Assembly: GCF_018350175.1 (NCBI RefSeq) | Contig: NC_058377.1 | Coordinates: 61,442,001-61,506,000, forward strand | From: Felis catus | Taxonomy: Eukaryota | Direction: 5' to 3' | Length of the DNA: 64,000 nt | Shown here: in pieces, positions 4,699 to 45,288 of the stretch | How positions within the stretch are numbered: the first letter of the stretch is position 1 | Layout: the number at the start of each line of letters is the position of its first letter | Program-made: the position numbers and the translations under genes | The notes under the pieces: generated by a model | Database searches by the model: none | What the model saw: the letters and a program-made list of their open reading frames with translations, nothing else | Told to the model about the DNA's origin: nothing

Positions 4699-5649
4699 AT
4701 GTTCAAGCTCAATGGCACAGTCTTCATGCCCTCAGTGTTGACACTGGTCGGGATCCCTGGCTTGGAATCTGTGCAGTTCTGGATTGGAATTCCTTTCTGT
4801 GCCATGTACATCACTGCTCTGTTTGGGAATTCCCTGCTCCTGGTCATCATCAAATCGGAACACAGCCTCCATGAACCCATGTACCTCTTCCTGGCAATGC
4901 TTGGAGCAACAGACATTGCTCTCAGTACCTGCATCCTACCCAAAATGCTAGGAATATTCTGGTTCCATTTACCAGACATATATTTCGATGCCTGTCTCTT
5001 TCAGATGTGGCTCATCCACACCTTCCAGTGTATCGAATCAGGAATTCTGCTGGCCATGGCCCTGGACCGCTATGTGGCCATCTGTGATCCCCTGAGACAT
5101 GCAATCATCTTTACCCACCAACTAGTCACTCAGATTGGGGTAGCAGTGACACTCAGAGCAGCCCTCCTTGTAGCTCCATGTCTCATCCTCATCAAATGTC
5201 GGCTGAAACACTTCCGGACCACTGTGGTCTCCCATTCATACTGTGAGCACATGGCCGTCGTGAAGTTGGCAGCAGAAGATACTCGAATCAACAAGATCTA
5301 TGGTCTGTTTGTGGCTTTCACTATACTTGGATTTGACATAATCTTCATCACACTCTCCTACATCCGAATATTTATAACTGTCTTCAATCTGCCTCAGAGA
5401 GAATCTAGGCTCAAAGCCTTTAACACCTGCATTGCCCATATTTGTGTCTTCCTTGAGTTTTATCTCCTAGGTTTCTTCTCCTTCTTTACACACAGGTTTG
5501 GGTTCCACATTCCACCCTACATTCATATTCTTCTGTCCAATCTTTATCTGCTTGTCCCTCCTTTGCTCAATCCTATTGTGTATGGGGTGAAAACCAAACA
5601 GATTCGAGATCGAGTGTCTAAGATTTTCCACTTTAAAGATCCATCTTAA
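4699..5649 (+). CDS. OR52A5: Olfactory receptor, class I, OR52A subfamily (OR52A5-like), 316 aa, intact
   Basis: 7TM ORF with LHEPMY, MALDRYVAIC, SHSYCEHMAVVKLA, KAFNTC, PPLLNPIVYGVKTKQIR; N-glycan site NGT at 5; closely resembles human OR52A5 as I recall it; candidate acceptor tttttgtttctag at 4605-4617. Confidence 0.93.
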   Translation: MFKLNGTVFMPSVLTLVGIPGLESVQFWIGIPFCAMYITALFGNSLLLVIIKSEHSLHEPMYLFLAMLGATDIALSTCILPKMLGIFWFHLPDIYFDACLFQMWLIHTFQCIESGILLAMALDRYVAICDPLRHAIIFTHQLVTQIGVAVTLRAALLVAPCLILIKCRLKHFRTTVVSHSYCEHMAVVKLAAEDTRINKIYGLFVAFTILGFDIIFITLSYIRIFITVFNLPQRESRLKAFNTCIAHICVFLEFYLLGFFSFFTHRFGFHIPPYIHILLSNLYLLVPPLLNPIVYGVKTKQIRDRVSKIFHFKDPS

Positions 5650-11275: not shown

Positions 11276-11362
11276 CAGTGATCATTATTTGAGTATCAAA
11301 CCATTATTATAACTATTGTAATAAGTAGGATGAAACTTGACAATGATGATTTTTACTCGGGA

Positions 11363-11592
11363 TTTTTAAAATTTTTTTTTATAATTTATTTATTTATTTT
11401 GGAAGAGAGAGAGCACACACATACAGGAGCAACTGAGGGAGGGGGAAATAGAGGGAGAGAGAGAATCCCAAGCAGACTCTGCACTGTTAGTGCAGAGCCT
11501 GAAGCAGGGCTTGGGCCCATGAACTGTGAAATCATGACCTGAGCCGAAATCAAGAGTAGGACACTTACCCTACTGAGCCACCTAAGTGCCCC
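11363..11592 (-). mobile_element. CanSINE (older)
   Basis: Reverse-complement SINE; TSD 11354-11368 / 11593-11607. Confidence 0.9.
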
Positions 11593-11605
11593 TACTCAGG
11601 AATTT

Positions 11606-11825
11606 AAAAAAAAATTTTTTTTCAACGTTTATTTATTTTTGGGACAGAGAAAGACAGAGCATGAATGGGGGAGGGGCAGAGAGAGAGGGAGACACAGAAT
11701 CGGAAACAGGCTCCAGGCTCTGAGCCATCAGCCCAGAGCCCCACGCGGGGCTCGAACTCACGGACTGCGAGATCGTGACCTGGCTGAAGTCGGACGCTTA
11801 ACCGACTGCGCCACCCAGGCGCCCC
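11606..11825 (-). mobile_element. Young SINEC_Fc-type CanSINE
   Basis: CpG-intact felid sequence gagatcgtgacctggctgaagtcggacgcttaaccgactgcgccacccaggcgcccc. Confidence 0.95.
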
Positions 11826-12594
11826 AGGAATTTTTAATTAGTGCATGTAACAGTGAAAATTGGAAAAAAGAATTTGTTTTTATAAAATGCAATGTTCAAT
11901 GTACTGAGAATTTTAAAATTATTACAATAATTAGCCTAGTTGTTTCACATCTGTGAACATTATAAAATAGTATCCATAAATATAGAATATGGAATAATGT
12001 CAATACTAAATAACAATTATTGCAAATATTTACTGAAAGCTTCCCATAAAGGCAGAAAAATTCTAAAAAAATTTATTGGCTGATACACAGGTACAGATCT
12101 AAAGGAAACGAAATGTTTAAAGAATGAGTGGATGGAGAGAAAACAATTTAAGGACTGTATTGACCAATGAAAATACAGGATAGATAAGTCTTAAGCACTG
12201 AGGGGTGGAAGGTGACTGACATGGATGGTATTACCCAAAGGTGACCTTGCACAACTGAAGATGTAATAATAGTAAACAAAGAATACTGACGTGGCACTAA
12301 GGACCTTTCCAAGGGAATCGGGAAATAATAATGAGAATTAATGACAGAAAGAAACTTAGTCATGGAGGTTGGCATGGTCCTCAGTCAGCCAGGATGAGTG
12401 GTGAATTAAACAAGAGAAAGACAAGGAAATATTACAAAATAAAAATAAGAGAAAAATACACAACATCAAATGTCCCCGCTAAAAGGTATAACTGAATTGA
12501 AAAATAGCATTTTGGGGACAAAGTTGCAACTACTGTTAACATACCATGACTTCATAAAACAGATTCTGCCAATATGGGTTTGTATTTACATATT

Positions 12595-13548
12595 TTAGTT
12601 TCCAGAAATCTTCTTGCTTGGGAAGAAGAGACCAGCCACTCGGTCACGAATCTGCTTGGTCTTGACGCCATACACCAGGGGATTGACTGCGGGAGGCACC
12701 AAAAGATACAAACTCGCAAAAATTATATGAATGCTTGGAGGTACCTTCTTGCCAATGCGGTGAGTTAGGAAACTAAACAGTGCAGGGGTGTAGGAGACAA
12801 GTATAGTGCACACATGGGCAGCACAGGTGCCCAGCGCTTTCGAGCGGGCATTCTGGGAAGACAGCCGGAAGACTGCCTGGAGGATTTTGGTATAGGATGC
12901 GGCTATGAGCCCTAGGTCCCACACCATCACTGAAAGGGCCACAGAGATTCCGTACACTCTGTTAATGAGGGTGTTGGCACTGGCCAACTTCACCACAGCC
13001 ATGTGCTCACAGTAGGCATGATTGATGACATATTTAGTATAACATGGTAGCCTTTTAATAAGAAGAGGACAGGGCAAAACCATAAGGATAGCTCGGGTCA
13101 TACCAACTAGACCCATTTTAATGACCATTGGTGTTGTCAGGATGGTTGTATAACGCAATGGGATACAAATAGCTACATAGCGGTCAAAGGCCATGGCAAC
13201 CAAGAGGGATGATTCAATTATGCAGAATGTGTGAATGAAATACAACTGTGTCAGGCAGGTGTCAAAGTCAATCCAATGTGCATCCATCCAGAAGATACCA
13301 AGCATCTTGGGGGCCATGGAAGAGGCAAGAGCCATGTCATTCACTGCCAGCATACAAAGGAAGAAATACATAGGCTGGTGGAGGCTTGGTTCTAGTTTGA
13401 TGGTGATGATGATTACACTGTTCCCCAGCAGGGCCAGGGCAAACAGGAGGCAGACCGGGATGCCAATCCAGCAGTGAAAATCTTGCAAACCAGGAATACC
13501 AACCAGGAAAAAAGATGAGATGTAGCGATGTGTAGCATTGTCTGCCAT
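12595..13548 (-). CDS. Olfactory receptor, class I, OR52 family (copy A), 317 aa, intact; subfamily uncertain, possibly OR52AE-like
   Basis: LHQPMY, MAFDRYVAIC, HAYCEHMAVVKLA, KALGTC, PPAVNPLVYGVKTKQIR; NAT glycan site at 4; candidate acceptor AG at 13602-13601. Confidence 0.93.
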   Translation of the reverse strand: MADNATHRYISSFFLVGIPGLQDFHCWIGIPVCLLFALALLGNSVIIITIKLEPSLHQPMYFFLCMLAVNDMALASSMAPKMLGIFWMDAHWIDFDTCLTQLYFIHTFCIIESSLLVAMAFDRYVAICIPLRYTTILTTPMVIKMGLVGMTRAILMVLPCPLLIKRLPCYTKYVINHAYCEHMAVVKLASANTLINRVYGISVALSVMVWDLGLIAASYTKILQAVFRLSSQNARSKALGTCAAHVCTILVSYTPALFSFLTHRIGKKVPPSIHIIFASLYLLVPPAVNPLVYGVKTKQIRDRVAGLFFPSKKISGN

Positions 13549-14097
13549 GTTAGAACTGGAGACCTTGCATGCTCAGATACAAAGTAGCCAGACTAATCTC
13601 CTATGCGCAGAATGAAGGATGGCAACTAACTCCACCATGGTCCTGCATGTGGGGAATCCAGACACAGTAGAAGGGTTAAGGCTCTAAATCTTCAGGTAAA
13701 CCACTTCGCCATTCTGAATCTCAGTATCTTCATCTGCAAATGAGAAAATTGTGTTCATATTTCAGAAATTTTTTCCCAGTTTTTGAATTTTATTTAATTT
13801 ATTCTGTAATTTTTATTTCTTAATAGATGATCAGATAGTAAAATAATGGTCTCATCATTGTGTCAAAGCTAGTGTTGCATTCTGTGATACAATCATTTTC
13901 AGGAACATTGAGATCAAGTGTGGATACAAGTGAATAAACATACACACAATAATTAACAAATACTTCAAAATGCAGTCATTATTTTAATGATATTCTTCTT
14001 CTCAGAGAGCATAACTTAATAATCAGTTCAGAGTAATATCTCCTAATCCTAATATATAAGAACAAAGCTTATAAAGTTAAAAACAATAAGGGCTTTA

Positions 14098-14323
14098 GGG
14101 GCGCCTGGGTGGCGCAGTCGGTTAAGCATCTGACTTCAGCCAGGTCACGATCTCCGGTCTGTGAGTTCGAGCCCCGCGTCGGGCTCTGGGCTGATGGCTC
14201 AGAGCCTGGAGCCTGTTTCCTATTCTGTGTCTCCCTCTCTCTCTGCCCCTCGCCCGTTCATGCTCTCTCTCTCTCTGTCCCAAAAATAAATAAATGTTGA
14301 AAAAAAAATTTAAAAAAAAACAC
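14098..14323 (+). mobile_element. Young SINEC_Fc-type CanSINE
   Basis: ggggcgcctgggtggcgcagtcggttaag head; 16-bp TSD 14082-14097 / 14324-14339 with 1 mismatch. Confidence 0.95.
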
Positions 14324-14747
14324 AACAATATGGGCTTTATCATCCAAAGCAATTTATTCCTATTTTAGATGAACTCCTTAAGATGATCTGAAGGTGGACA
14401 GCATAACATAAGCATATAAACAGGAAAAAAGAGAAGATTTTATTTATTTGTGCTGTCATATGATTTAAAGTTGGTGCAAATAAGCATATGAGTTGGTTAG
14501 TCAGCCCAGTCTATTTTCTGCAAAGCCATTACTGCCATCTATAAACTCAGCCCTACTTCTGGTTGGCATCCCAGACCTGCCTAATGACAGTGACGAGCAA
14601 ATCATGTACAATTCAGCCCTTTAGACTCAGCAGCAAAAGGATTTTCTTATGATTCTTGCTCTCACCTCTCTTTTTCTTCCTGCCGTCCAGTTTCTACCCA
14701 ATATTGTAGTTCTGGAACATGCACTCTACTCTTTTTAATCTGCTTCT

Positions 14748-14954
14748 TAAATTTATTTTTTTAAATGTTTATTTCTGAGAAAGAGTTGAGCAGGGGAGGG
14801 AGACAGAGGGAGGGAGAGAGACAGGGAGACACAGAATGTGAAGCAGGCTCCAGGCTCTGAGCTGTCAGCACAGAGGGGCTCAAACCCACAAACCGCGGGA
14901 TCATGACCTGAGCCAAAGTCAAGGTTTAACCGACTGATCCACCCACGTGCCACC
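14748..14954 (-). mobile_element. CanSINE
   Basis: Reverse-complement SINE body. Confidence 0.9.
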
Positions 14955-15041
14955 GTTTTTTAAATTTATAATTGCTCATAGCATCTCAGTTTCTGTTCAG
15001 GAACTCCACTGATGTGAAGGCTCAAGATATATTGAGAAACT

Positions 15042-15253
15042 GGGGTGCCTGGGTGGTGCAGTCAGTTAAGCGTCCAACTTCAACTCAGGTCATGATATCA
15101 CGGTTCACCGGTTGGAGCCCTGCGTTGGGCTCTGTGCTGAAAGCTCAGAGCCTGGAGCCTGCTTTGAATTCTGTGTCTCCTTCTCTCTCTACCCCTCCCC
15201 TGCTCATGCTCTGTCTCTCTCTCAAAACTAAATAAACATTAAAAAAAATTTTA
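15042..15253 (+). mobile_element. CanSINE
   Basis: Perfect 16-bp TSD aagatatattgagaaa 15024-15039 / 15254-15269. Confidence 0.95.
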
Positions 15254-16702
15254 AAGATATATTGAGAAATATTCCAAATGGCAATGCTTCCTTCCTTTCA
15301 CGGAGGTCTAAATAATATCTGTGTACGGAAAAAACTTTCTGGTTAGGGTAGCTGTGAAACATGGTATACTGGTACTATACGAGTAAGTATCTGAGATACT
15401 GCCTCGTAAGGAATTGAAAAATGTCAAACGAGTCATAAAATATTTCATAAAAAAAATCAGTGCTTAAACTTTAGCCACAATGTAGAAACCCAGAATTGTA
15501 GAAATTACTATATATGGATGAAGCCTGTAACTCCAGGCAGAGAGAAAAACTTGAGACAAAACCTACAGTAATCAAAAATTCCAAGTGTGAAAGGTTTCAA
15601 AGCATGTTAAATTTCTGCTCTTGTGAATTCTCACATAATAGTTTTCTACGTGGAAACTTGTTTTGCCAGGTTTCATCCTTGTATCTGCTTCTGACAGAAT
15701 CAAACACAAGAGATTAACCTAGGCAGAAATATAGGAATACGTTTTAGCTAGGACACATTATTTATGATTGCAAAGGAGTGAGCATAATTACTTTTAGGAA
15801 TCCTGCTGGTATATGTAAATATTTTACAATCATCTTTTAGTTTTCAATAAATTAACTTGTAAGAATAGTAACACATCTAATCTATACCGAGAGAAAATTA
15901 AAGTCACTTCCCCTTAAACAAAAGGAGTTTCCTGTGCCATCCCTAGAAAAGGGCACACAGGGAGTTACAGATAATGGCCCCCAAATGGCATTCTCCACTT
16001 CCACCTAGAAAGTCCTGTCTATCTTCTCTCAGGCTTAGTATGAAAGAAATATTGGAGACACCCATTTGTTTCCATAAGGTCATTCTTTACATTATCTTCA
16101 GCAGACAGTCTGCTAGGACAGCCAGAATGTCTGTTGGCACAACCATCCCATCTGTTTCTGAACCACGTACATACCATATACCTTCTGACAGCCTGGCCTT
16201 TGCCATTTTGCCTGTTTCTGGGTCAGTCCACATAGCCCTTGCCTGGAACCTGCCGCTTCAGAGTGGGGGACCTTATCCGAATACCACAGTATTTTCTAAT
16301 ATTTTCACAGTGCTTCTGAATGCATTATCTACTTATGTATTAGAAGAATAACACATAAATAGATCCCACATGAAAATAAGTAAGTTCTACCAATTCTTCC
16401 CCCATGGGATTGTATCTCACTTGCTGGCAGCCACCCAGAAATTAAATTAGGAAATCTCACCATATTCCTTACCTCCTCAATCTGTTTATATCCAATCCTT
16501 CAGGCAAGCAACCATAAAGTCTTTGTTTCTGTTCGAGCTCTTACTATGTGCTTTGTAAGCGTTCATTTTCAGGTGATCCTCCTTCATCAAGAGTGTGAAC
16601 TCCCAAAGGAAGTCACTGAACCTTAACTCTCAATAGATTCTGAGAGAAGATGGGATGTTTTCGTACTTTCTCGACAAGTCTCTTAAGAATTTCACAGATT
16701 TT

Positions 16703-16915
16703 GGGGCACCTGGGTGGCACGGCTGGTTAAGCGCCTGACTCTTGATCTCAGCTCAGGTCATGATCTCACAGTTCGTGAGTTTGAGTCTCACATCAGGCTC
16801 TGCACTGATTGGTGCTGAGCCTGCTTAGGATTCTGTCTTTCCTTCTCTCTGCTCCTCCCCTGCCTATGCTTTCTCTCTCTCTAAATAAACAAATAAAACT
16901 TTTAAAAAGGCAGAA
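16703..16915 (+). mobile_element. CanSINE
   Basis: Perfect 18-bp TSD aagaatttcacagatttt 16685-16702 / 16916-16933. Confidence 0.95.
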
Positions 16916-17040
16916 AAGAATTTCACAGATTTTTATCTTGCTTCCAAGGCTTCTGACCCACTAGAGATGGGTTGCATAACCAGAAAATTCCCTGTAGCAG
17001 ATATTTCCAAGATTCTTCCATTAACAGATAGTGACCCAGC

Positions 17041-17041
<1 letters not shown>

Positions 17042-17076
<35 letters not shown>
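17042..17076. repeat. (GT)n microsatellite
   Basis: GT run. Confidence 0.95.
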
Positions 17077-17079
<3 letters not shown>

Positions 17080-17959
17080 GATTCTATTCAGCTCCTGTTC
17101 TCCACTACCAAATCATATTACTCACTATTCATTATGTCTCATAAACATGTAACATCAACCCATGATACATTGCAGATGATATTAAAAAATAACAAAAATA
17201 CTCTCTGAAAATCCTCAAATGTTCATTTTCCATTGTAGCATATAGGCCAATATGCTATGTGGGGTATTTAAAAAGTATGACTGTCATTGCCATTGGAGCA
17301 TTGAGGACTCTGTAGTTAAGTTGTCATTGTGGTTGCTTTGTAACGGGCTATTGTGATGCTCAGGAGACCCCTCTGTTTGGAAGACTGATGGGTCCCTGAG
17401 GAGAGATGAGGTCAAAGGGAAAAGAGGACTGGGCCAGGACTGAGCACAAAACAGTAACAGTGTCTCTCTAGAACAGCTATGTGAACGTTACACTCTCCCC
17501 AGAGCTTGTACATGGGTAGTACTCATGTGTTTCTCCTTTGGAGGATATAGTCTTAAGAGACTCTCTCATGATATCCCATCAAATGAGATGCCTGAGATGC
17601 CAATCAAATATAGTTCACTGAAAAAACCTGTGAGAAGACTAAGAGAAAATCAGTTGAGTGTGGGCAAAATATCTGAAAATTGAAAGAAGGAAATTTCTGC
17701 CCTTAGTTCCAGTATGACTGAATTCTCATTTATGTCTCAGGAAAAGATTAAGGTGGTCTGAAAGTATAAAGGTAGCTCAGGGTATTGCATGATCTCCAGT
17801 TGGTTTTTCTTTCTCTCTTGTATGATTTTACTGACATGATTCTCATACATCCAGTCACCTTATGTTTCCCCTCCCTATCAATATGTGCTCATATACATGC
17901 ACAGGTTTGTGTAATTCAGTCCTTCAGGGTTGGTGAGTCAGGACTGCTCTCCACTATGG

Positions 17960-20800
17960 CCAAACTCATCTATCATCCCTCCCACTGTGCAGTAAGGGAT
18001 CATTTTTATTTCCTCACATTTCTGGCAATGTTAAGCGTTCTATGTTCTCCTGATTTAATGTAGGGCTTAAAGAGGGTTCCTTTTAATTTCTACTTCCCCC
18101 ATTACCAGAGAGTAAGAACATGGACTCACATGTTAGAGTGCGTTTTGCCCTTTTTTCTCTACTGTAACTGTTGTTACTCTTCAGTTTTCTATTGGAGACT
18201 CGATTTTTCTTGCAGATTTCCCACCTAAGTCTTACCAGAAACATTGCAAACAACTTCTCCCAGTCGGTCTCTTACCTGTCGTGTTTTATTTTTTTTTCCA
18301 CTTTTTTACTTTTAACCGACCTATAAATTTTTTATTTAAAAATTATCATAAAGATATTCGCTTTTTTTTCTTTCAGCATACAATATGATAGGATTTAACA
18401 TATATAGAGAGTCATCTAATCTTCATCATAATCATGATGCCAGAAAGCATCCCTTTATCCCAAAAATCTTCTCGATGCTCTCCCTTTATAGTCACATCTA
18501 CCCTGACCCATAAGCACTGGTAGACACTGGCCCGTTCTGCACCACTAATACTGGATTTTCAAAATGGCATATAAATATGAAAGCCTACACTATCTAATTT
18601 TTGATGTTGGATTATTTTACTTAATTTAGTGCCTTTGAGATTTATCCAAATTGTTTTCTAAATCAACATTTTCTGTAATGTAAAGTGAATTCCATTGTAT
18701 AGATTTAGTACAATGTGTTTATCTAGTCACCTGTTGAAGAACATGTGGGTTATTTCTATTTCTGGGCAATTATGCTTATACATACTATATTCATCCGCGT
18801 GCAGCTTTTGAATGAACATTTTTAAAATTTTTTCCAGTGTTACTCATTATTAGAATTGGAAACTTCAACACTCCTCTTTCAGTAATTGATAGACCAGGCA
18901 AGCAGAAAATCAAGTAAGACCTGAATGTAAATACAAATCACTGTGTTCTATTCAACAAAATCAATCATTCTGGGACATAAGACTCACTTTAATTTAAAAT
19001 AATCAAAATCATACAAAGTATGTTCTCAGACAATAATGGAATTAACCTTGCTATCAACAATAGAAAGATAACTAGAAAATCTCCAAAGTATTTGGAAATT
19101 AAACACATATGTCAAGAATGAGTTCTTGAGAGAAATTCATATGATATGCCCATGACTTCTGGTGCCCATTATCTTTCTGAGAAACCAGCTATAAATTTTA
19201 TTGGAAATCCCTTGAATGTAATGAGTCATTTTTTTTCTCTTTCTGCTTCAAGATACTTTTTTCTCCAAGTTTTTATTTAAATTCCAGTTGGTCAACATAC
19301 ATTTTAATATTAATTTCAGGTTTAGAGTTTAGTGATTAATCACTTACATATAATACCCGGTGCTCCTCATGAAAGATTCTATCTCTATCCTTGAAAATTT
19401 AACCATGATGTGTCTAGATATGGATATCTTTGAGTTTATCTTGCTTGTTAGTGCTTGTTTTTATACTTCATGATGTTTATTGAGGTCTTGAATATGTAGA
19501 TTTATGTTTTCTATTAAATTTGGGGTTATTTTCTGTCATTTTTTCAAATAGTTTCCCTCCTTTCTCTCTCTCCTTTCCTCTTGGGAATGCCATTCGTATA
19601 TGTTGGTATACTTTTTGGTATCCTTTATGTCCCTAAGGCTCTGTGAATTTTCTTCATTCTTTTCTCTTTCTTTTCTCATAAAAAATAATCTCAGTTGACC
19701 TCTCTTCATGTTACTTCTGCTAGCTCAGTCCTGCTGCCTACCTAGCAGAATAACTTTCAGTTATTCTTTGCAACCACAGATTTTTAATTTTTTTTTATAA
19801 TTTTATTTTCTTTATTGATATTCTCCACTTGTTAAACATTGTTACCATACTTTTTTAAAATTCTAAAATCATGAGGACATCTGGGTGGCTCAGCCAGTAA
19901 AGCATCTGACTCTTGATCTCAGCTCAGGTCATGATCTCACAGTTCATGATTGTGAACCCCACGTCAGACTCTGCACTGATGGCAGAGAGCCTGCTTGGAA
20001 TTCTCTTTCTCCCTCTTTCTCTGTCCCTACTCACACCCTCTTTTCTCCCAAAATAAGTAAATAAATTTAAAAATATTTTTTTTAATTTCAGAATCATGTT
20101 TCCCTTTATTCTTTTGACATAAATGTGGGGGATGGGCTAAAAAGGTGATGGGCACTAAGGAGGGCCCTTGTGTTGATCACTGGGCTCTCCCTCTAATATG
20201 GGTTATAGTTGCTTATTTCTTTGTGGGGCTTGTATTTTTTTGTTGAAAACTCAACATTTTATATAATAAAACATGGAATTTGTGGAAATTGCATCCCTTT
20301 CTCTTCCCAGAAATAATTTAGTTGTGTTGTTGTTGTTGTTAGTGACCTTACTGGTTTAATACTATAAAGTGTTTATTCGCCGTAATGTGTGGCCACACAA
20401 CATCAGTGATTTGGTAGCTTAGTGATCCACTACTGATTGTTCAGAGATTTACTTAAATTCTTTGAACCAATAATTTTTATATTCTCTGCCAAAAGGATCT
20501 GTGTATGGGTTGGGGTTCTTATTCAACATCTAAGCAGTTTATAATTCTATATTACACTTCATGTCCTGCTTGTACAGGGACTCAAGATAACCCAGACATG
20601 AGAGACTGAAGCCCTCACAGATCTTTCTTGGCTACATGCACAGCCCTGCACATGCTCATGGTCTTGTAGAGTCGCAATATGTCAGAGCTTTTCAAAATGT
20701 CTTGTAGACATTCCATTTTTCAAGTCCCCCTGTGAGGTTTTGGCCAGGCTCTTGTTTTCTGCAACTCGTGGAGAATATAGCTATTCAATAATGATGAAGA
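17960..20800 (-). mobile_element. Mosaic of old L1M fragments, mostly minus strand, with a plus-strand endonuclease-region piece ~18850-19130 and short carnivore L1 3'-end pieces
   Basis: Antisense ORF1/ORF2-like text; plus-strand gaaacttcaacactcctctttcagtaattgataga matches L1 EN. Confidence 0.55.
19873..20075 (+). mobile_element. CanSINE
   Basis: Head ggacatctgggtggctcagccagtaaag; degenerate TSD ending aatcatg. Confidence 0.88.
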
Positions 20801-22450
20801 GAGTTAAACTACCTTTTATATTTGATTTCAAACTAGCTAAGATATGTGATGTTTTGGCAATCAAAAGAAAAGGAAAATTTTATCTATAGTATATGTGTAT
20901 ATTAAATAAGAACTATTCGTATGCATACTTAACATACTTAACAAATATAGAACATTCACAAATAATGACTTTCTTCTGTACCTCCCAAGTACTTGTCACA
21001 ACTACTACCGCTCTTACTGCTACTGCTAGTATGCATTCACCTTCTCCTCAAAGAAGTCACCCCCAAAGTCACTCCACGGTTTTGTTATCTTTTGCATATA
21101 TTTCTTTAATCTGGTGGTTCCTGATGTTTGTCACTGTGTTGCTACTCCCATTGGTATTCTTTGTGCTTTTACTCATTATCCTGTGATGCCTACCTTCCTA
21201 ATTCTTCTTAATAGTGGCATGTCACACCCACTAGATTTCACTCATAAGTTTGTTAAGCCTTTGTCACGTGTCTCAACAACTGGTAATTCCATTTGAATTC
21301 TTACTGGGTTTTTTTGGTGACTTCAAAGTTTGCATAGATTTTTTTCCCCATCATGCTAGCCTTTCAGTTTTTCTACTCACTTGCTCCTATTACTATTCTC
21401 ACTACATTTTTGTGATCACACTGTCTTCATGTCATCCAACAATCTTGTCTCATCCTCTTTTCTCATCTCTCATTAGTTCCTTGACCTGCCTAGTCTAACA
21501 TACTATTTACTACAACTGCTGTGAAATTGCTCCTACAAAGGGAGTAATACCTGCTGAATTAGAAAGACTTTCCCTTGTACTTGAAAAAAAAAATACCTCT
21601 TACCTAATATTGCTTTGTAATCATTTATCTATTTGTATATCAGTTTATTCCTTTAGGTTATGAGCTCTCAAATTAATAAATTGATTATGAAAATATACCC
21701 TTACATTTTGAATGAATGTTGGCCTTCTTTAGTCCTTAGGAGAAGAACTTTTCAGATTCCCATTCTATTCCTCAAACTTACCTTATCTTCAGAAACAGGC
21801 AGTGTATCCTCACCCAACACTTGCAAAGTATTAATCTCTTCAAATGTTATAATATGCCATTTTAAAATCATCTTTTGCATGAAATTTAAGAGTGTGATCT
21901 CCAACATGTATTTTATTCTTTAATTTAGTTGTTTCCTCCTCTTTGCCCTTTAGTACTCTATTCCCTTATAAGTACGTATTAGAATTTGTTGAATCACACA
22001 TCTACATAGGGGAGAATTTAATACAATTGAATGTGTATTTGTCACTGAAAAGTGGATGGGATGCTATAAGCAATACGTCTCAGCCCTACCCTTCTTGAAT
22101 TTTGCTATAACACTGAATGATTATCACCAATGGATTATGAGTAGAATTAATGTATGTTTCTCTCAGGTTATACCTTTTTAAAAGAGGATATGGAATAAGT
22201 ATTTATTAACAGTAACTAATTTAACTTAATAAAATATTTATTCCAATGTTATTTTATCATTTTTTTATTAATCTCTTTAGCTGATACATTTTACCTTATG
22301 ATGAAGTCTACAAATCCACCATCGCTTTATCATAGCCAGTGTCTGATTTCAGGCACTTTCCATCAGCATATATGAGGTTGCTGTACATAAAGCTGTAAAC
22401 TGTCTATAGATAAAGCTGATGTGGAAGAATGCTTCATAAAGAGGCTTTCT

Positions 22451-22676
22451 TTTTTTTTTTCTTTTTTTTTTCCAACGTTTATTTATTTTTGGGACAGAGA
22501 GAGACAGACCATGAATGGGGGAGGGGCAGAGAGAGAGGGAGACACAGAATCGGAAACAGGCTCCAGGCTCAGAGCCATCAGCCCAGAGCCCGACGCGGGG
22601 CTCGAACTCCCGGACCGCGAAATCGTGACCTGGCTGAAGTCGGACGCTTAACCAACTGCGCCACCCAGGCGCCCCC
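22451..22676 (-). mobile_element. Young SINEC_Fc-type CanSINE
   Basis: CpG-intact; TSD taaagagg(c/t)tttct. Confidence 0.95.
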
Positions 22677-23379
22677 GTAAAGAGGTTTTCTAACTTACAG
22701 AAGAAACCAAAGTGTATGGCTCACTTTTGGGACACAAGGGCAAGATGAAACAAGGTTGTGTTAAGGACATGTCCAGATTTGCATCAGTGACTCCTAGAGC
22801 AGCTGCAGTATGTATGAGACACCTCCTGGGACACAGTGAACAGAGCTCATCTGTTTCTCTTTTGGAAAAACCAGCCTTTCAAAAAGCAGTTTCAAACCCA
22901 TGGTGTCCATTAAACAGATTCCAAGGATATGCAGGCAATCAGAGAACGATTTGTGAGAAATCCAGAAAAAAAAATGGTATATTAACTGAAATTAAATGTT
23001 CATATTCAACAATTTCCAGCTTTTAGTTCCTGTTAGGACCCTGGACAGAATGAAGGGACAGGCTGTTTCAAATACCCTTTACTTTTCATTGTTCTATGCC
23101 CACGGTATACTCTATCAGGATGTGTAACTTTGTTTTTAGGCTTTTCATGCTTCTTTTCGCCATTTTTTAATTTCACCTGTTTTAAGTACTCCTCATCTTA
23201 CACACACACACACACAAACTAATGTGTATTAGGGGTTTCCTCATATTTAATGATGGACAATCATATCTGAATAAAAATCTCTTCAGTGATTAAAAATAAA
23301 CACTTACCTATTTTATAGTGTGTACTAACTTCCAAAAACTGGTCTAAGCACATTTTGTGCTGAATCATTTAATTCTTTC

Positions 23380-23520
23380 TTTACCCTCTGAATTAAATCC
23401 TCATAATATGTTACTTTTATAAATGAGAGAACTGAGGCCAGTACTGATTTAAGAATATACCCAAAGACACACAGGTAAAAACTCGTGGTGCTAGATTTTA
23501 AACCCAAGCATTCTGATGAA
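23380..23520 (-). mobile_element. MIR SINE
   Basis: ttttataaatgagagaactgaggc...agatttaaacccaagcattctga. Confidence 0.65.
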
Positions 23521-24028
23521 AGACTGAACTTTTCACCACAATGCGATGCTGTTTAATCCAGGTGAAGTTATCCCCCCTGGGAATAATTGCAAATGTCCTG
23601 TGTGATGAAAGATATAGGCCACAAGTCCTGTTAATGACCTGAGTATAAAATGAATGTAATTTGTACTTTTAAAGCCCATTTTGCTAATATTAAGTTGGAT
23701 ATGTTGTGTGGACATATTAAGGATTCATCGGAATCACAGTGTTTTGTTTAATTATTGGCTTGATTGAAAGAAATTTCTTTTGGTTATGATTATGACATAA
23801 ATTATCATGTAATTATTCCAAATACGTTGTGAGCCACAAAAGATTATTATTCCCCTTATCAGAAGTCTGGACTGCAGGCAGCTTGCTGCTGTTATGGCTC
23901 ATATACACATATTTTAGGTCATAAATACTAGAATTAAAGTTTGCTTAAAGACTTATTAGTTAATAAAAATAAGAGCTTGTGGTTACTGTGAATTGGTAAG
24001 CGTATTTTTGAAAATTAACCTGACCATG

Positions 24029-24420
24029 CTGAGAAAGACAAAAACCATATGATTTCACTCATGTGTGGAATCTGAAAAACAAAACAAATGGATAAACAAA
24101 CAAAAAGTAGAATCAGACCTATAAATACAAAGAACACACTGGTGGTTGCCAGTGGGAAAGTGGATGAGGGGTTGAGCAAAATGGGTGAAGGGGAGCAGAA
24201 GATACAGGCTTCCAGGTGTGGAACATATAAGTAATGGGAATAAAAGCTTCAGCATAGGGAATATGGTCAATTATATTGTAAGAGCACTGTATGGTGACAG
24301 ATGGTACCTACACTTGTGGTAAGCATAGTATAACGTATAGAGAAGTTGAATCACTATTTGTAGACCTAAAACTACTGTGACATTGTGTGTCAACCATACT
24401 CAAAGAAAGACCTTAAAAAA
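24029..24420 (+). mobile_element. 5'-truncated L1 3' end (L1MA/L1_Carn type)
   Basis: gagaaagacaaaaaccatatgatttcactcatgtgtggaatctgaaaaac...gtgtcaaccatactcaa. Confidence 0.8.
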
Positions 24421-24807
24421 ATCAATGTGACCACATGATTTGAGAGTTTTTATATTCTGATAATACTTATTTAATTATCTCACATTTGGAGATGTAACAT
24501 AAATACTATAGGAACAATTTAATCTGAAAATACATAGAAAATAACAAAATTGGTAACATATATTAAATGTTTTCCATGTGTCACTCTTTGATAATATTCC
24601 GATTTGGTTTCATGTCAAATAGCTTGTACACTGAAAACATAAGTTTATATAAGGTAATTTTTTAAGTAAATGTACAGCAACAACTATGCCCGCTGCAAGG
24701 CACAGGGGAGCCCAGAAGGAACAGTTGGACTACTTTCAGTTATTCATTATGGTAGCCGTAACTTTTGATAATCATGTTACACCAATTAGGACTGGTATTT
24801 ACATATT

Positions 24808-25761
24808 TTAGTTTCCAGAAATCTTCTTGCTTGGGAAGAAGAGACCAACCACTCGGTCACGAATCTGCTTGGTCTTGACGCCATACACCAGGGGATTGAC
24901 TGCAGGAGGCACCAAAAGATACAAACTCGCAAAAATTATATGAATGCTTGGAGGTACCTTCTTGCCAATGCGGTGAGTTAGGAAACTAAACAGTGCAGGG
25001 GTGTAGGAGACAAGTATAGTGCACACATGGGCAGCACAGGTGCCCAGCGCTTTCGAGCGGGCATTCTGGGAAGACAGCCGGAAGACTGCCTGGAGGATTT
25101 TGGTATAGGATGTGGCTATGAGCCCTAGGTCCCACACCATCACTGAAAGGGCCACAGAGATTCCGTACACTCTGTTAATGAGGGTGTTGGCACTGGCCAA
25201 CTTCACCACAGCCATGTGCTCACAGTAGGCATGACTGATGACATATTTAGTATAATATGGTAGCCTTTTAATAAGAAGAGGACCTGGAAAAACCATAAGG
25301 ATAGCTCGGGTCATACCAGCTAGACCCATTTTAATGACCGTTGGTGTTGTCAGGATGGTTGTATAACGCAATGGGATACAAATAGCTACATAGCGGTCAA
25401 AGGCCATGGCAACCAAGAGGGATGATTCAATTATGCAGAATGTGTGAATGAAATACAACTGTGTCAGGCAGGTGTCAAAGTCAATCCAATGTGCATCCAT
25501 CCAGAAGATACCAAGCATCTTGGGGGCCGTGGAAGAGGCAAGAGCCATGTCATTCACTGCCAGCATACAAAGGAAGAAATACATAGGCTGGTGGAGGCTT
25601 GGTTCTAGTTTGATGGTGATGATGATTACACTGTTCCCTAGCAGCGCCAGGGCAAACAGGAGGCAGACTGGGATGCCAATCCAGCAGTGAAAATCTTGCA
25701 AACCAGGAATACCAACCAGGAAAAAAGATGAGATGTAGCGATGTGTAGCATTGTCTGCCAT
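24808..25761 (-). CDS. Olfactory receptor, class I, OR52 family (copy B), 317 aa, intact; 308/317 aa identical to copy A
   Basis: Same OR motifs as copy A; 14 nucleotide differences counted over 954 nt. Confidence 0.93.
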   Translation of the reverse strand: MADNATHRYISSFFLVGIPGLQDFHCWIGIPVCLLFALALLGNSVIIITIKLEPSLHQPMYFFLCMLAVNDMALASSTAPKMLGIFWMDAHWIDFDTCLTQLYFIHTFCIIESSLLVAMAFDRYVAICIPLRYTTILTTPTVIKMGLAGMTRAILMVFPGPLLIKRLPYYTKYVISHAYCEHMAVVKLASANTLINRVYGISVALSVMVWDLGLIATSYTKILQAVFRLSSQNARSKALGTCAAHVCTILVSYTPALFSFLTHRIGKKVPPSIHIIFASLYLLVPPAVNPLVYGVKTKQIRDRVVGLFFPSKKISGN

Positions 25762-28259
25762 GTTAGAACTGGAGACCTTGCATGCTCAGATACAAAGTAG
25801 CCAGACTAATCTCCTATGCACAGAAAGCAGGTTGACAGAATGATTGGTTCTGTGTATGGAGATTCCACGCATACTAAAATAGTGCATCTGAAGGGCTGAC
25901 TTTTCCCTGAAACTTCTGTAAGCTGTTGGGTAAATCACTTCACCATTATCTTCATTTGCAAATAAGATCTAGTTAAGTTCTTTTTAAATTTTCTCTTCTA
26001 TGTCCAATTTTATTCTATTCTACTCTTTCATTTTTATTATCTACTAAGTATACAGGTAGTGACAAAATTTCTGCTTCTTTGTGCCTAGTAGTTTTCTGTG
26101 TTTGTGATATAAACAGCTTTAAGAAAGGCAAAGACCACTGATCTTGGGGAATTTTCAATGATGTGTGAAAATGCACGCGGGAATACATAAGCACACACAC
26201 ACATGTGTCCATATTTGCAGTCATTTGCAGGTTATGTAAAAGGCAATTGTAATTTTAATGATATGGTAGTCCACAGACAACTTAATCAAATAATCAGGAA
26301 TGCATAATGAGAAATTCAAGCAGTTTAAATATAACCAGAATTCTTGGGAACATTAAAAAGTAATAAACTCTTATTCTCACCCCTGGTTAATGCTTTCTTA
26401 TTTCAGAAAAGATCTTGAAGATAATCAGAAGGACAGGATATTAGAAGCATGTCTTGAAAGTGAGGACTATCAGCTGAATACAGTAGGAAAACACAAATCT
26501 GCCATTAGGGTTTTCACTGCATATTCTCCAGATATCAGTGTTTTTTGGTTTTTGCTTTTGTTTTTTGCAATGGCTATATTCCACAATATTCTATATAATT
26601 CAAAAACAAGAACTTATATGATTGCATTTATCAGCCCATCCAAATTTATTCATATTTTAATGAATATGTTAATTCTATATTAACTCTATATTATTAAGGA
26701 AAAACTGTTTTTACTGAGCCATCCAAGAAAAGTTAACTTTATTCAACATCTTATAAAGTACCATACTTAAGTTTTAAAAAGATTTACAAGGAAATTAATT
26801 TAACATTTTAAGTGATTAGGGGAGAAAAGCTGTAAATCAGTTATGTGCCCTCCAATTTTTTTGGGGGGGATTTATTTCTTCACTCTTTCAGATAATGTAA
26901 ATATTGCTATCAACACACATCTTCAGTTAATAGGAATAATGTAAGTCCATTTGGTGTTCTGCCCCCTCTGACTCCTAGCCTTGACCTTGGGTTTGCAACC
27001 TGCCTAATGGCAATGAATAGCAAATCAACATCAATCCAGTCCTCCTGGTGTCAGCGCCACAAGCATCTTTTCATGATCCTTTCCTGATCTTGTCTTTTCA
27101 TTCAGATAACTGCCCTTAACCTTCTTCTGACGATCTAATTTCCTCCCAATATCATAATTTTGGATGCACTTCCCAGTCTTCATAACATACCTTTTGAAAT
27201 TTGTAATTGTCCTCAATGGCTGCTCCTGAACTCAACCGATATGAAAGGTCAATAAATATTAATAAATATTCCTATTGACAATGCCTCTATGTTTGAATTT
27301 CCACCTAATATCTGTGAGGGAAAAACTTTCTGGTTATAATACGCACATTCTCCTAGCAAGCGCATGCTACTCTGGACCTGAGTAAGTATCTGAGGTGTTT
27401 CTTTGTAAGGAAGTGAGAATTCAAATTTTAGTTAATTATTGTAAACATCTTAGAAGAATTTAGAATTTAAACATTATACAAACACCCAGATTTAGTGGAT
27501 TGCCACATCGGATGTGAGGCCCACAACTTCAGGTAGAGATAAGATACCCTGGGGCAAGAAACTGTGAGTATCGAACATTTAAACTATAAAAAGTAAGTTT
27601 AATAAAAAGAGTACTTAATACCTTTACAGGTTTGTCCATGTTCCATGATTTTTCCTCCTTAGTGTAGAACCAAAAATTCAAAAGGACGGTTGGCAGAGAA
27701 CTAAGTATGCAGCAATCAAAATAATACACCTAGAGATATAGACATGATTTCTAGCCAGAAAAAATTACATAAAATAAAAAATAAGCTTAATTGCTTTGTG
27801 ATACGTACATACTTACTAACCAGAGTAGGTCTATAGGCATCAGTAAATTTACTTATAAGACAATGCTAAGAGAAAGATGTTAAGTTGTTTCAATTTATAG
27901 ACAGCCAGGCTCCCTTCAGGGCACTAGAATGTGTAACATAGGGAACCACAGAGAACAAACTCCAAGTACATGTCAGCCTATTCTGAATGAACTCAGCAAG
28001 GTTGTTCATTACCTTATATTTAGCAGATTGCCACGGAGGTCAGAAAGTCCCCACACCCTCCTAGTTTCCTGTTAGTTCTGTTTTTGTATCAGTTTCTGAA
28101 ACATACAGATACAATGTTCCTTCTGCCAGCCGGGTTCTGGCATTTTACCTGCATCTGGGTTAGTTAGCAGAATCCTTTGCCTTTCATCTGCCATTCCAGA
28201 GAGGATAGTGGTAGTGGCCATGTAATGCTTTCTGTATGATCTGTCATATATATAAATAT

Positions 28260-28900
28260 GTCCCACACAACATTCACTATTTTCCTGAAAGCTCCCCTAC
28301 CATCTGTCTGTATCTCATTTGCTGGTAACAGCAACCACACAGTCGTTGAAGCCAAAAATCTCAGAGTTATCCTTGACCCTTTGCCATTTGCAACCTTAAT
28401 AGTACAATCAAGCAGCTATTACATCTTGACGAATTTAATTATTTGATACCTATCAAATACGGCATGTGCCATCATCTCCATCTCCTTTAGCTGTGACATT
28501 CATTAACTTCCATGTAGTCTGTGACCTGGCCTTCTAATTATTCTTCCTATTTCAGGTTTTTCCTTAGTCCATCTTCTCACATGATCAGCTATCTTTCAAA
28601 AGTTAGATATGATTAGTTTGCTCCAAATGTCATCTTTGAAAGCATCATCTTATTTTAAAAAATGTTAACTCAGTTTGTCACTTGTGTTTACCTTTTTCAA
28701 GCCCCCAATCTTGCCACTGCTTCGCTTCAATGTGTTCCAGAACTTCTAGTAGTTCTGGGATCATACTATACAGTTTTTACTTTTTTATGACTTTAAACTG
28801 ACCCTACCCTTGGATTTGACTAATTTTTCCCTTATTAGCCTGATAAGCTTTTATCTATCTTTTTAATTCCTGCTGAACATTCTCTGATTTTCTGAAGTGT
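28260..28900 (-). mobile_element. L2 LINE fragment (homologous relic also at ~16360-16520)
   Basis: gtatctcatttgctgg...aaaaatctcagagttatccttgac...caatcaagcagc resembles antisense L2 3' region. Confidence 0.55.
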
Positions 28901-37441: not shown

Positions 37442-37590
37442 NNNNNNNNNNNNNNNNNNNNNNNNNNNNNNNNNNNNNNNNNNNNNNNNNNNNNNNNNNN
37501 NNNNNNNNNNNNNNNNNNNNNNNNNNNNNNNNNNNNNNNNNNNNNNNNNNNNNNNNNNNNNNNNNNNNNNNNNNNNNNNNNNNNNNNNNN
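37442..37590. other. Assembly gap (~149 N) in the L1 3' region
   Basis: Run of N. Confidence 0.97.
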
Positions 37591-38701
37591 TACTTTGGCT
37601 ATTGTTGATAGTGCTGCTATAAACATGGGGGTCTCCCTTTGAAACAGCACATCTGTATCCCTTGGATAAATGCTTAGTAGTGCAATTTCTGGGTGGTAGG
37701 GTGGTTCTATTTTTAGTTTTTTGAGGAACCTTCATACTGTTTTCCGGAGAGGCTGCACCAGCTTGCATTCCCACCAACAATGCAAAAGAGATCATTGTTC
37801 TCTGCATCCTCGCCAACATCTGTTGTTGCCTGAGTTGTTAATGTGAGCCATTCTGACAGGTGTGAGGTGATATCTCATTGTGGTTTTGATTTGTATTTCC
37901 TTGATGATGAGTGATGTTGAGCATTTTTTCATGTGTTGGTTGGCCATCTGGATGTCTTCCTTGGAGAAGTGTCTATTCATGTCTTTTGCCCATTTCTTCA
38001 CTGGATTATTTGTTTTTGGGTGTTGAGTTTCATAAGTGCTTTATAGATTTTGGATACTAACACTTTAACTGATATGTCATGTGCAAATATCTTCTCCCAT
38101 TCTGTTAGTTGTCTTTTAGTTTTACTGATTGTTTCCTTCGCTGTGCGGAAGCTTTTTATTTTGATGAGGTCCCAGTAGTTCATTTTGGCATTTGTTTCCC
38201 TTGCCTCCGGAGACGTGTTGAGTAAGAAGTTGCTGTGGGCAAGATCAAAGAGGTTTCTGCCTGCTTTCTCCTTGAGAATTTTGATGGCTTCCTGTCTTAC
38301 ATTTAGGTCTTTCATCCATTTTTAGTTTATTTTTGTGAATGGGGTAAGAAAGTGGTCCAGGTTCATTCTTCTGCATGTTGCTGTCCAGTTTTCCCAGCAC
38401 CACTTGCTGGAGAGACTGTCTTTATTCCACTGGATATTCTTTCCAGCTTTGTCAAAGATTAGTTGGCCATACATTTGTGGGTCCATTTCTGAGTTCTCTA
38501 TTCTGTTCCAGTGATCTGAGTGTCTGCTCTTGTGCCAGTACCATACTGTCTTGTTGATTACAGCTTGGTAGTATAGCTTGAAGTCCGGGATTGTGATGCC
38601 TCCTGCTTTGGTTTTCTTTTTCAAGATCGCTTTGGCTATTCGGGGTCTTTTCTGGTTCCATACAAATTTTAGGATTATTTGTTCTAGCTCTGTGAAGAAT
38701 G

Positions 38702-38845
38702 NNNNNNNNNNNNNNNNNNNNNNNNNNNNNNNNNNNNNNNNNNNNNNNNNNNNNNNNNNNNNNNNNNNNNNNNNNNNNNNNNNNNNNNNNNNNNNNNNNN
38801 NNNNNNNNNNNNNNNNNNNNNNNNNNNNNNNNNNNNNNNNNNNNN
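38702..38845. other. Assembly gap (~144 N) in L1 ORF2
   Basis: Run of N; ORF2 frame is preserved across it. Confidence 0.97.
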
Positions 38846-44633: not shown

Positions 44634-45073
44634 TTAATTCTTTTATCTCTCTGATTTTTAATCTTCCCTAAGAAGCTTTAAAATATTTGTTAAGTTAAAA
44701 ACATTGCCATTTGTTTAGTCACAGTGAAACTATGGAAATGTTTTAGGAGAATAGATACAGTTAGATAAAGAATATATTTCTATTTCAGGTGTATGCCGTT
44801 ACAAGCCCCATCGGAGTGTTAATGATTTCTACATGTGTTTATGTACATTTATATCTACAGGTGCTGCATTTGTGAATGGGATTTGTCATTCTAGTTTGCT
44901 TTCTATTGTATTTTTGAATATAAATAAATGGAAGGCTTATTTTTAGGGTGTGTTATTTGCTAAATGCTTATAATTTCAACAAATTGTTAGAAAAAAATTA
45001 TTGAATATCACATTTAGAATAAGTTTGAAGTAAATAAGAACATTGCCTTCTTCCATTTCATATGAACATTAAA

Positions 45074-45288
45074 TTTTTTTTTCAACGTTTTTTATTTATT
45101 TTTGGGACAGAGAGACACAGCGCATGAATGGGGGAGGGGCAGAGAGAGAGGGAGACACAGAATCGGAAACAGGCTCCAGGCTCCCAGCCATCAGCCCAGA
45201 GCCTGACGTGGGGCTCAAACTCACGGACCGCGAGATCGTGACCTGGCTGAAGTCGGACGCTTAACCCACTGCGCCACCCAGGCGCCCC
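45074..45288 (-). mobile_element. Young SINEC_Fc-type CanSINE
   Basis: CpG-rich; TSD ca(t/c)atgaacatt. Confidence 0.95.

Follow-up and report, generated by a model that had tools for sequence, protein, structure and literature searches.

The L and M cone opsin genes of primates, like some other tandem pairs, are homogenised by gene conversion, but at a few functional sites the difference between the copies is maintained by selection. Conversion between olfactory receptor (OR) paralogs was reportedly described by Nagawa et al. in 2002 for the mouse MOR28 cluster. For a primate OR cluster, conversion of a whole coding region between OR paralogs was described by Sharon et al. (1999), whose results are given here as summarised in PMC1995454. 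The mosaic divergence that can arise under conversion is modelled, in outline, in the preprint 10.1101/2025.10.29.685298. In the literature searched we found no paper that links OR52P1 or the class I ORs of carnivores to conversion.

The window, by which we mean the whole 64-kb stretch of Felis catus DNA that was analysed, contains two such receptor genes, A and B, which lie in tandem, in the same orientation, 12.2 kb apart (Table 1). Judged by their sequences, both are intact class I olfactory receptor genes of the OR52 family (OR52P1-like). Their proteins differ at 9 amino acids and match the Pfam family 7tm_4 (PF13853) with E-values of 2.7e-100 for A and 9.8e-103 for B, residues 32-308 being covered. 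Both carry the OR motifs NAT4, MAFDRY119, KALGTC237 and NPLVYG289, and also C98 and C180. The top protein matches, from felids and other mammals, are labelled OR52P1 or OR52P1-like by the source records; for both proteins the best of them are felid, and the felid matches of the gene A protein are 97-99% identical to it. The best solved structure for the pair is the consensus OR52 receptor (8hti, E 1.9e-116), followed by consOR51 and OR51E2. Residue R264 aligns with R265(6.59) of the consensus receptor OR52cs, and in receptors of the OR51 and OR52 families carboxylic acids are bound by the arginine at 6.59 (PMC10703812). A tblastn search of the 64-kb window with protein A as the query revealed no third OR52P1-like copy or pseudogene; the other three ORs of the window were 38-53% identical to protein A.

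Table 1. Positions in the window of the two genes, the block they share, its internal differences and its flanks.
Feature	Position	Strand	Description
Gene A, OR52P1-like class I olfactory receptor CDS	12595..13548	-	Intact ORF, 317 aa + stop, protein P0122
Gene B, OR52P1-like CDS	24808..25761	-	Intact ORF, 317 aa + stop, protein P0006
Homogenised block, copy A	12582..13612	.	5' leader (64 nt), CDS, and 13 nt beyond the stop codon
Homogenised block, copy B	24795..25825	.	Gapless partner of 12582-13612
Difference cluster, copy A	13022..13127	-	Codons 141-176, TM4 to ECL2
Difference cluster, copy B	25235-25340	-	Same stretch as A 13022-13127
Codons 158-160 of A	13069..13077	-	Leu-Pro-Cys, copy-specific
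Codons 158-160 of B	25282..25290	-	Phe-Pro-Gly, copy-specific
5' flank of A (intron and upstream)	13722..16427	.	Nine islands colinear with B 25944-28325, ~69% identity, SINE-interrupted
5' flank of B	25944..28325	.	Counterpart of A 13722-16427, colinear with it
3' flank island of A	11880..12047	.	Identity of 68% with B 24413-24577 at an offset of 12533
3' flank island of B	24413..24577	.	Partner of A 11880-12047
SINE copies in 5' flank of A	14093-14320, 14808-14956, 15039-15248		Found by BLAST
Candidate splice acceptor of A	13600..13602	-	AG 13602-13601, first exon base 13600, 52 nt before ATG
Candidate splice acceptor of B	25813-25815		Partner of 13600-13602

The original prediction, made from the sequence of the window, described a gapless alignment of the two copies at an offset of 12213 with 14 differences in the 954-nt CDS. 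Both statements were reproduced. The ungapped block has 15 mismatches in 1031 nt (98.5%), and the 14 that fall in the CDS comprise 5 synonymous and 9 non-synonymous changes. In windows of 50 nt at this offset, identity is 0.94-1.00 within the block versus 0.14-0.46 beyond it. The edges are abrupt: the BLAST alignment reaches just 12569-13624 in copy A and 24782-25837 in copy B, and background identity is attained in ~12 nt at both ends. Outside the difference cluster of Table 1 the block holds eight differences, six of them at CpG sites, which fits a very recent homogenisation. GC3 is 0.55 and 0.54 in the pair versus 0.48-0.63 in the three other ORs of the window, and compared with these neighbours the pair has no GC3 excess that would be a sign of long-term biased conversion.

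The flanks were predicted to be colinear and 60-70% alike. This holds for islands, which are colinear at ~69% identity; the remaining flank sequence consists of SINE insertions or is unalignable. The homology becomes visible only with a word size of 7, +1/-1 scoring and local alignment, and blastn of the flanks at default sensitivity returned SINE copies only. On the 5' side nine HSPs form a chain with 63-80% identity per HSP (weighted 69% over 782 columns). Six of them reach 39-68 bits and the other three 28-33 bits, versus 37.9 bits for the best HSP of a reversed-subject control. Of 300 shuffles preserving local composition none reached the observed score, on the 5' side and the 3' side alike; the 3' island scored 32, and the highest null score was 24. 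As a further control, another, unrelated OR of the window was taken, and its flanks showed no similarity to those of the pair. The Jukes-Cantor (JC) distance is ~0.40 in the colinear islands and 0.0147 in the block, which is ~27-fold lower. The immediate flanks did not occur as repeats in the rest of the window, so that a transposon insertion cannot be demonstrated to have set the edges. No shared O/E-like or homeodomain promoter motifs were found in the best-conserved upstream island (16150-16266 versus 28088-28204), and the label of promoter is not warranted for it.

Can such a step in divergence be produced without any exchange between the copies? Purifying selection alone, acting on two ancient duplicates, agrees with the intactness of both genes and with a dN/dS of ~0.23 outside the difference cluster. 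However, dS between the CDSs is only 0.022 against the flank distance of 0.40, and the 64-nt leader has a single difference. Since silent sites and leader have been homogenised too, the identity is not explicable by constraint at the protein level, and the clustering of paralogs by lineage described below also speaks against this explanation, which we regard as extremely improbable. Another explanation is a young duplication of ~1 kb or more in the felid stem, with flanks scrambled later by indels and no conversion. The felid A and B proteins do coalesce in the felid stem, and the flanks are rich in SINEs. But such a duplication would be expected to leave ~98% identity also in the non-repeat flank next to the block, a value that the original prediction itself had set against conversion; in this assembly that flank is colinear at ~69% on both sides. 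Two such genes are present in dog and in ferret too, and residues that arose after the felid radiation and are common to both copies demand later exchange anyway. A young duplication is thus a very unlikely origin of the pair.

The position of the edges deserves separate consideration. The near-identity was said to extend from 13 nt past the stop codon to 12 nt beyond a candidate splice acceptor, and this was confirmed: the 5' edge lies 64 nt upstream of the ATG and 12 nt past the candidate AG, and the tract upstream of this acceptor is 71% pyrimidine. The claim that the boundaries are exon-exact was not established. Two more AGs, 23 nt and 7 nt upstream of the ATG, are alternative acceptor candidates, so the 5' edge is near one candidate of three. 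The coding exon of OR genes normally runs on as 3'UTR, so a 3' edge placed 13 nt past the stop follows the ORF, not the exon. These positions also bear on RNA- or cDNA-templated conversion, in which a spliced transcript serves as the repair template and the 5' edge falls at the exon start. A 5' edge no more than 12 nt from a plausible acceptor, with no intron sequence in the block beyond that, is what such a template would give. However, identity continues for those 12 nt beyond the acceptor with one mismatch only, the other two acceptor candidates would put 29-45 nt of intron within the block, and the 3' edge is not a transcript end. Repeated events with the same edges are more simply understood as DNA conversion limited by homology, and we consider an RNA template very unlikely.

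Under DNA conversion limited by homology, the edges could form in the following way. Conversion would require near-identical pairing. Identity has fallen to ~70% or lower in the introns and the 3' sequence, and the tracts would thereby be kept inside a core of ~1.03 kb. Every conversion would then renew the core, and the step at its edges would become sharper.

The comparison across species was done at the level of proteins and involves few sites. As the original prediction expected for the coding part, paralogs in the protein trees group by lineage, here by carnivore family. Copies A and B of the felids fall into a single clade (support 100/99), the dingo pair is nested in the canid clade (100/99), and the two ferret copies are joined (99/91). 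The paralogs of pangolin and of white rhinoceros show grouping by lineage likewise. Within felids, A-type and B-type copies were treated as positional orthologues on the strength of the signature at residues 158 and 160 and on consecutive RefSeq accessions of A-type and B-type proteins in three species, namely leopard cat, jaguar and clouded leopard. The felid tree calculated without codons 158-176 is sorted by subfamily, the subfamily label requiring 1 change and the paralog label 5, and the lynx pair is joined in it (SH-aLRT 90); node support inside Felidae is 83-90 and not decisive.

Individual residues point in the same direction. All Felinae have S311 in both copies, while N311 is found in all Pantherinae as well as in the dog, ferret and hyaenid-like outgroups. 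Both lynx copies have P225 and S8, both jaguar copies have V111, and both copies of pantherines have I145. Such lineage-specific residues common to both copies indicate that conversion was recurrent and went on past the felid radiation. Serine at position 311 was also observed in a bear.

Near-identical paralogs of 1 kb are a known trap for polishing, and the CDSs might in truth be more different and have been homogenised in the assembly through cross-mapped reads. However, both copy types, with the same 158/160 signature, are present in six felid species with 97.2-98.7% amino acid identity within pairs, and B-type proteins were found on independent ENA and Logan contigs, which speaks against an artefact of a single assembly. 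Moreover, the 15 differences that were kept include a conserved signature of three transversions, which cross-mapping tends to erase. An artefact of assembly or polishing therefore has a very low probability.

The ~27-fold step in divergence, the family-wise grouping of paralogs and the lineage-specific residues shared between copies agree with the original prediction of repeated non-allelic conversion after an ancient duplication, as opposed to a recent duplication of the whole block. We conclude that this tandem OR52P1-like pair, a product of old duplication, has very probably been kept near-identical by recurrent interlocus gene conversion.

The differences that persist are clustered. Seven of the 15 lie in 106 nt (6.6%) versus 8 in the other 925 nt of the block (0.86%), with a permutation P of 0.016. 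The ratio of non-synonymous to synonymous changes is 6:1 in the cluster versus 3:4 elsewhere, counts which are too small for a claim of significance. Neither the cluster nor the copy-specific residues had appeared in the original prediction. L158/C160 in A and F158/G160 in B told the copies apart in 18 of 18 felid sequences from 12 species. Lynx copy 1 is a mosaic, with A-type residues at 158/160 but B-type residues at 169/176.

The spared residues 158 and 160 correspond to TM4 positions 4.58 and 4.60. In the alignment residue 160 is matched to F161(4.60) of OR52cs, a consensus receptor ~60% identical to the pair, whose F161 makes contact with the tail of the odorant (PMC10703812). In OR52E8 position 4.60 is Leu, not Phe, and this Leu is required for its response to HMHA (PMC13458081). 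On the evidence of these alignments, conversions erasing a difference in odorant specificity at 158-160 have most probably been purged by selection. In this way a short stretch around codons 158-160 would escape homogenisation, selection on odorant specificity being the proposed cause. A more detailed scenario can be offered only tentatively, and we are inclined to doubt it: copy B may have gained L158F and C160G at pocket positions 4.58/4.60 in the felid stem, and selection may since have shielded the new specificity from an otherwise gene-wide overwriting in every sampled cat lineage. Function would then set the limit of conversion, over a stretch of ~10 codons.

Orthology calls for OR genes and 'birth-and-death' counts take it that genes rarely exchange sequence, an assumption stated in PMC1794568. 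Dated by its CDS, the cat pair would be a felid-specific duplication, whereas its flanks give it a much greater age. The same error may affect the dating of comparable pairs in dog, ferret, pangolin and rhinoceros. The locus, with its two candidate pocket residues, also offers a compact test case for the interplay of conversion with selection on ligand specificity.

How does the cat pair compare with the systems described before? It shares with the L/M cone opsins the tandem arrangement of duplicates, the recurrent conversion and the islands of divergence, which in the opsins lie at residues determining specificity, whereas in the cat pair the link to specificity is given by the alignment to OR52cs only. 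That conversion can take in the whole coding region of an OR is already known, and the cat pair is a new, clean example of this process and not a new mechanism. Like the OR cases of this type, it consists of tandem paralogs whose coding region has been homogenised within non-coding surroundings that have diverged, and the receptors are mosaics. It differs from them in being a class I, OR52P1-like pair, in the measured homology of its flanks, in recurrence across felid lineages, and in a conversion-resistant stretch of two residues that aligns to the odorant pocket.

Copy A (P0122) and copy B (P0006) code for intact 317-aa proteins with a full-length olfactory receptor (OR) domain (Pfam 7tm_4, E about 1e-100), and both keep the standard OR motifs. 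Their best matches are felid proteins named OR52P1 or OR52P1-like at source (97-99% identity), and among solved structures the nearest is OR52cs, the OR52 consensus receptor (8hti, E 1.9e-116). In the alignment with OR52cs, R264 pairs with Arg 6.59, its carboxylate-binding residue (PMC10703812). The three other intact ORs share just 38-53% protein identity with copy A, and no third OR52P1-like copy was found within the 64-kb window.

Open reading frames of the window
Feature	Position	Strand	Remarks
Copy A ORF	12595-13548	-	954 nt; pair partner 24808-25761
Copy B ORF	24808-25761	-	954 nt; pair partner 12595-13548
OR gene	4699-5649	+	intact; Pfam 7tm_4; 53% protein identity to copy A
OR gene	48341-49282	+	intact; Pfam 7tm_4; 38% protein identity to copy A
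OR gene	56990-57940	-	intact; Pfam 7tm_4; 52% protein identity to copy A
Upstream ORF, copy A	13550-13570	-	6 codons
Upstream ORF, copy B	25763-25783	-	6 codons
TTG-start ORF	38322-39191	-	289 aa; crosses one of two masked N runs (37442-37590, 38702-38845); no tblastn similarity to the OR

With a constant offset of 12213 nt, positions 12582-13612 (A) and 24795-25825 (B) align without gaps and show 15 mismatches in 1031 nt. Inside the ORFs lie 14 of them (5 synonymous, 9 non-synonymous), and this ungapped recount confirmed the block coordinates, offset and 14 CDS differences of the original prediction. In 50-nt windows at this offset, identity is 0.94-1.00 within the block and drops beyond it to the background of 0.14-0.46; BLAST lengthens the match by only ~12 nt per side. 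The Jukes-Cantor distance of the block is 0.0147. Selection on the protein is ruled out as the cause of this identity, since the likeness is just as high at synonymous sites (dS 0.022) and in the untranslated leader. Six of the eight differences outside a central cluster are at CpG sites, the pattern expected after a very recent last exchange.

How old, then, is the duplication itself? Standard blastn of the flanks found nothing but SINE copies; a more sensitive comparison detected genuine, colinear and old homology. On the 5′ side (higher coordinates) nine ordered HSPs lead from A 13722-16427 to B 25944-28325 with 63-80% identity (weighted 69%, 782 columns), while the 3′ side has a single island (A 11880-12047 vs B 24413-24577, 68%). 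Compared with 37.9 bits for the best match to a reversed subject, six of the chain HSPs score 39-68 bits and the remaining three 28-33 bits; after shuffling with local composition preserved, 0 of 300 trials attained the observed score on either side, and the flanks of an unrelated window OR had no similarity to the A/B flanks. The 5′ chain is broken by SINE insertions in the copy A flank, and SINE insertions account for most of its offset changes. Because the best-kept pieces alone are alignable, the flank distance of ~0.40 is a lower bound. The mammalian neutral rate is about 1-2e-9 per site per year, which would roughly place the duplication 100 million years ago or more. These values exclude a recent duplication of the entire region: colinear flanks at ~69% identity and a distance of ~0.40 surround a block at 0.0147. 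Whether the flanks too are ~98% identical was the question attached to the original prediction; their islands average 69% on the 5′ side, and the 3′ island has 68%. An old duplication with recurrent gene conversion very probably explains the pair.

Carnivore-type SINEs (~210 nt) are dense across the OR cluster (11361-11833, 14093-14320, 22465-22675, 45071-45288 and others). Several are young, with 93-96% mutual identity (e.g., 11611-11825 vs 22465-22675 and vs 14098-14311), and two stand in tandem (11361-11605 and 11611-11833). The best-kept flank island, 16150-16266 vs 28088-28204 (71% over 118 nt), exceeds its surroundings in GC content, lies ~2.6 kb 5′ of each ATG and may represent a regulatory element or a non-coding 5′ exon; no O/E or homeodomain motif common to its two copies was found.

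The cross-species comparison was done on proteins only and included 18 felid sequences (both copy types in six species, single copies in six more) and two genes each from dingo and ferret. In the carnivore and outgroup tree the felid copies all fall into a single clade (100/99), the two dingo genes (P0145/P0038) nest within the canid clade (100/99), and the ferret genes (P0141/P0148) pair together (99/91). Paralogs here sort by carnivore family. The OR52P1-like paralogs of white rhinoceros (P0015/P0022) and pangolin (P0009/P0014/P0039) likewise sort by lineage, and judging from these sequences concerted evolution of the pair may extend well beyond cats. Within-species identity of the pair is 97.2-98.7% for felids and 99.1% for dingo (3 residues differ); the ferret pair has no difference across the first 305 residues. 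Several derived felid residues occur in both copies of a single lineage and in no other, a sign of recurrent exchange. Every Felinae sequence has S311 and every Pantherinae sequence N311; N311 also occurs in dog, ferret and hyaenid-like outgroups, and S311 in a bear. Both lynx copies have derived P225 and S8, both jaguar copies derived V111, and pantherine copies of both types I145. That the same replacement arose in parallel at each of five sites is not credible. When codons 158-176 are removed from the felid tree, the subfamily label needs one change and the paralog label five, and the lynx pair joins; support is modest (83-90) owing to few substitutions. A polishing artefact could inflate some of the species-specific sharing, for example in lynx, but is very unlikely to account for the likeness of the pair: the same pair with the same 158/160 signature is present in six felid species, unrelated ENA and Logan contigs also encode B-type proteins, and position 311, consistent across the 18 sequences, is beyond the reach of such an artefact.

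Seven of the 15 differences are concentrated within 13022-13127 (codons 141-176; permutation P = 0.016), and six of these alter the protein. Residues 158/160 are strictly copy-specific in 18/18 felid sequences (L/C in A-type, F/G in B-type), and residue 169 nearly so (C in A-type, Y in B-type). The outgroup states (L158, C or S at 160, Y169) indicate that F158 and G160 arose in B, and C169 in A, ahead of the cat radiation. In Lynx canadensis, copy 1 (P0005) is a mosaic that combines A-type residues at 158/160 with B-type residues at 169/176, and copy 2 has N176 as in the A-type. To judge by the residues, a short stretch seems to have been exchanged within the cluster, and the mosaic makes the spared core narrower than the cluster. 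The alignment with OR52cs is ungapped (cat residue n pairs with n+1), placing residue 160 at F161(4.60) and residue 158 at I159(4.58). In the complex, F161(4.60) touches the odorant's hydrocarbon tail and limits its orientation (PMC10703812). OR52E8 has Leu, not Phe, at this position, which probably gives the ligand room, and alanine at that Leu abolishes signalling (PMC13458081). It is plausible that residue 160 gives the two cat receptors different odorant specificities, and that conversions erasing the difference were selected against.

A and B form a direct repeat with a spacing of 12.2 kb. If one copy were broken, its repair would involve non-allelic pairing, with the other copy as template. 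Heteroduplex formation and extension would require high identity, so tracts would end at already drifted sequence, and every event would refresh the identity of the core. Such homology-limited tracts with core renewal would keep a sharp edge stable without invoking exon boundaries. The exon-exact edges of the original prediction were not confirmed. At the 3′ end the block stops 13 nt past the stop codon, and OR coding exons normally run on past the stop as 3′UTR. The 5′ edge, 64 nt 5′ of the ATG, overshoots one candidate acceptor by 12 nt; two further candidate AGs stand 23 and 7 nt 5′ of the ATG. OR 3′UTRs are discussed in PMC6624953. A cDNA-templated event, able to yield an edge at the exon start, is disfavoured because identity continues beyond the candidate acceptor and events recur with the same edges. 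The upstream ORF of the common 5′ leader is the same in both copies, with its ATG 22 nt before the main ATG and its TAA directly before it; only splicing at the acceptor 52 or 23 nt 5′ of the main ATG would leave it in the mRNA.

The work of Nagawa et al. 2002 on the mouse MOR28 cluster has "gene conversion" in its title. Conversion of OR coding regions in a primate cluster was described by Sharon et al. 1999, as summarised in PMC1995454. OR orthology work explicitly assumes limited exchange between genes (PMC1794568). In the library searched, no paper was found that connects conversion with OR52P1 or with class I ORs of carnivores, so beside the earlier reports the A/B pair is a new and well-documented case of a process already known. 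To these systems it adds a mapped conversion-resistant island at a residue that matches the odorant pocket by alignment.
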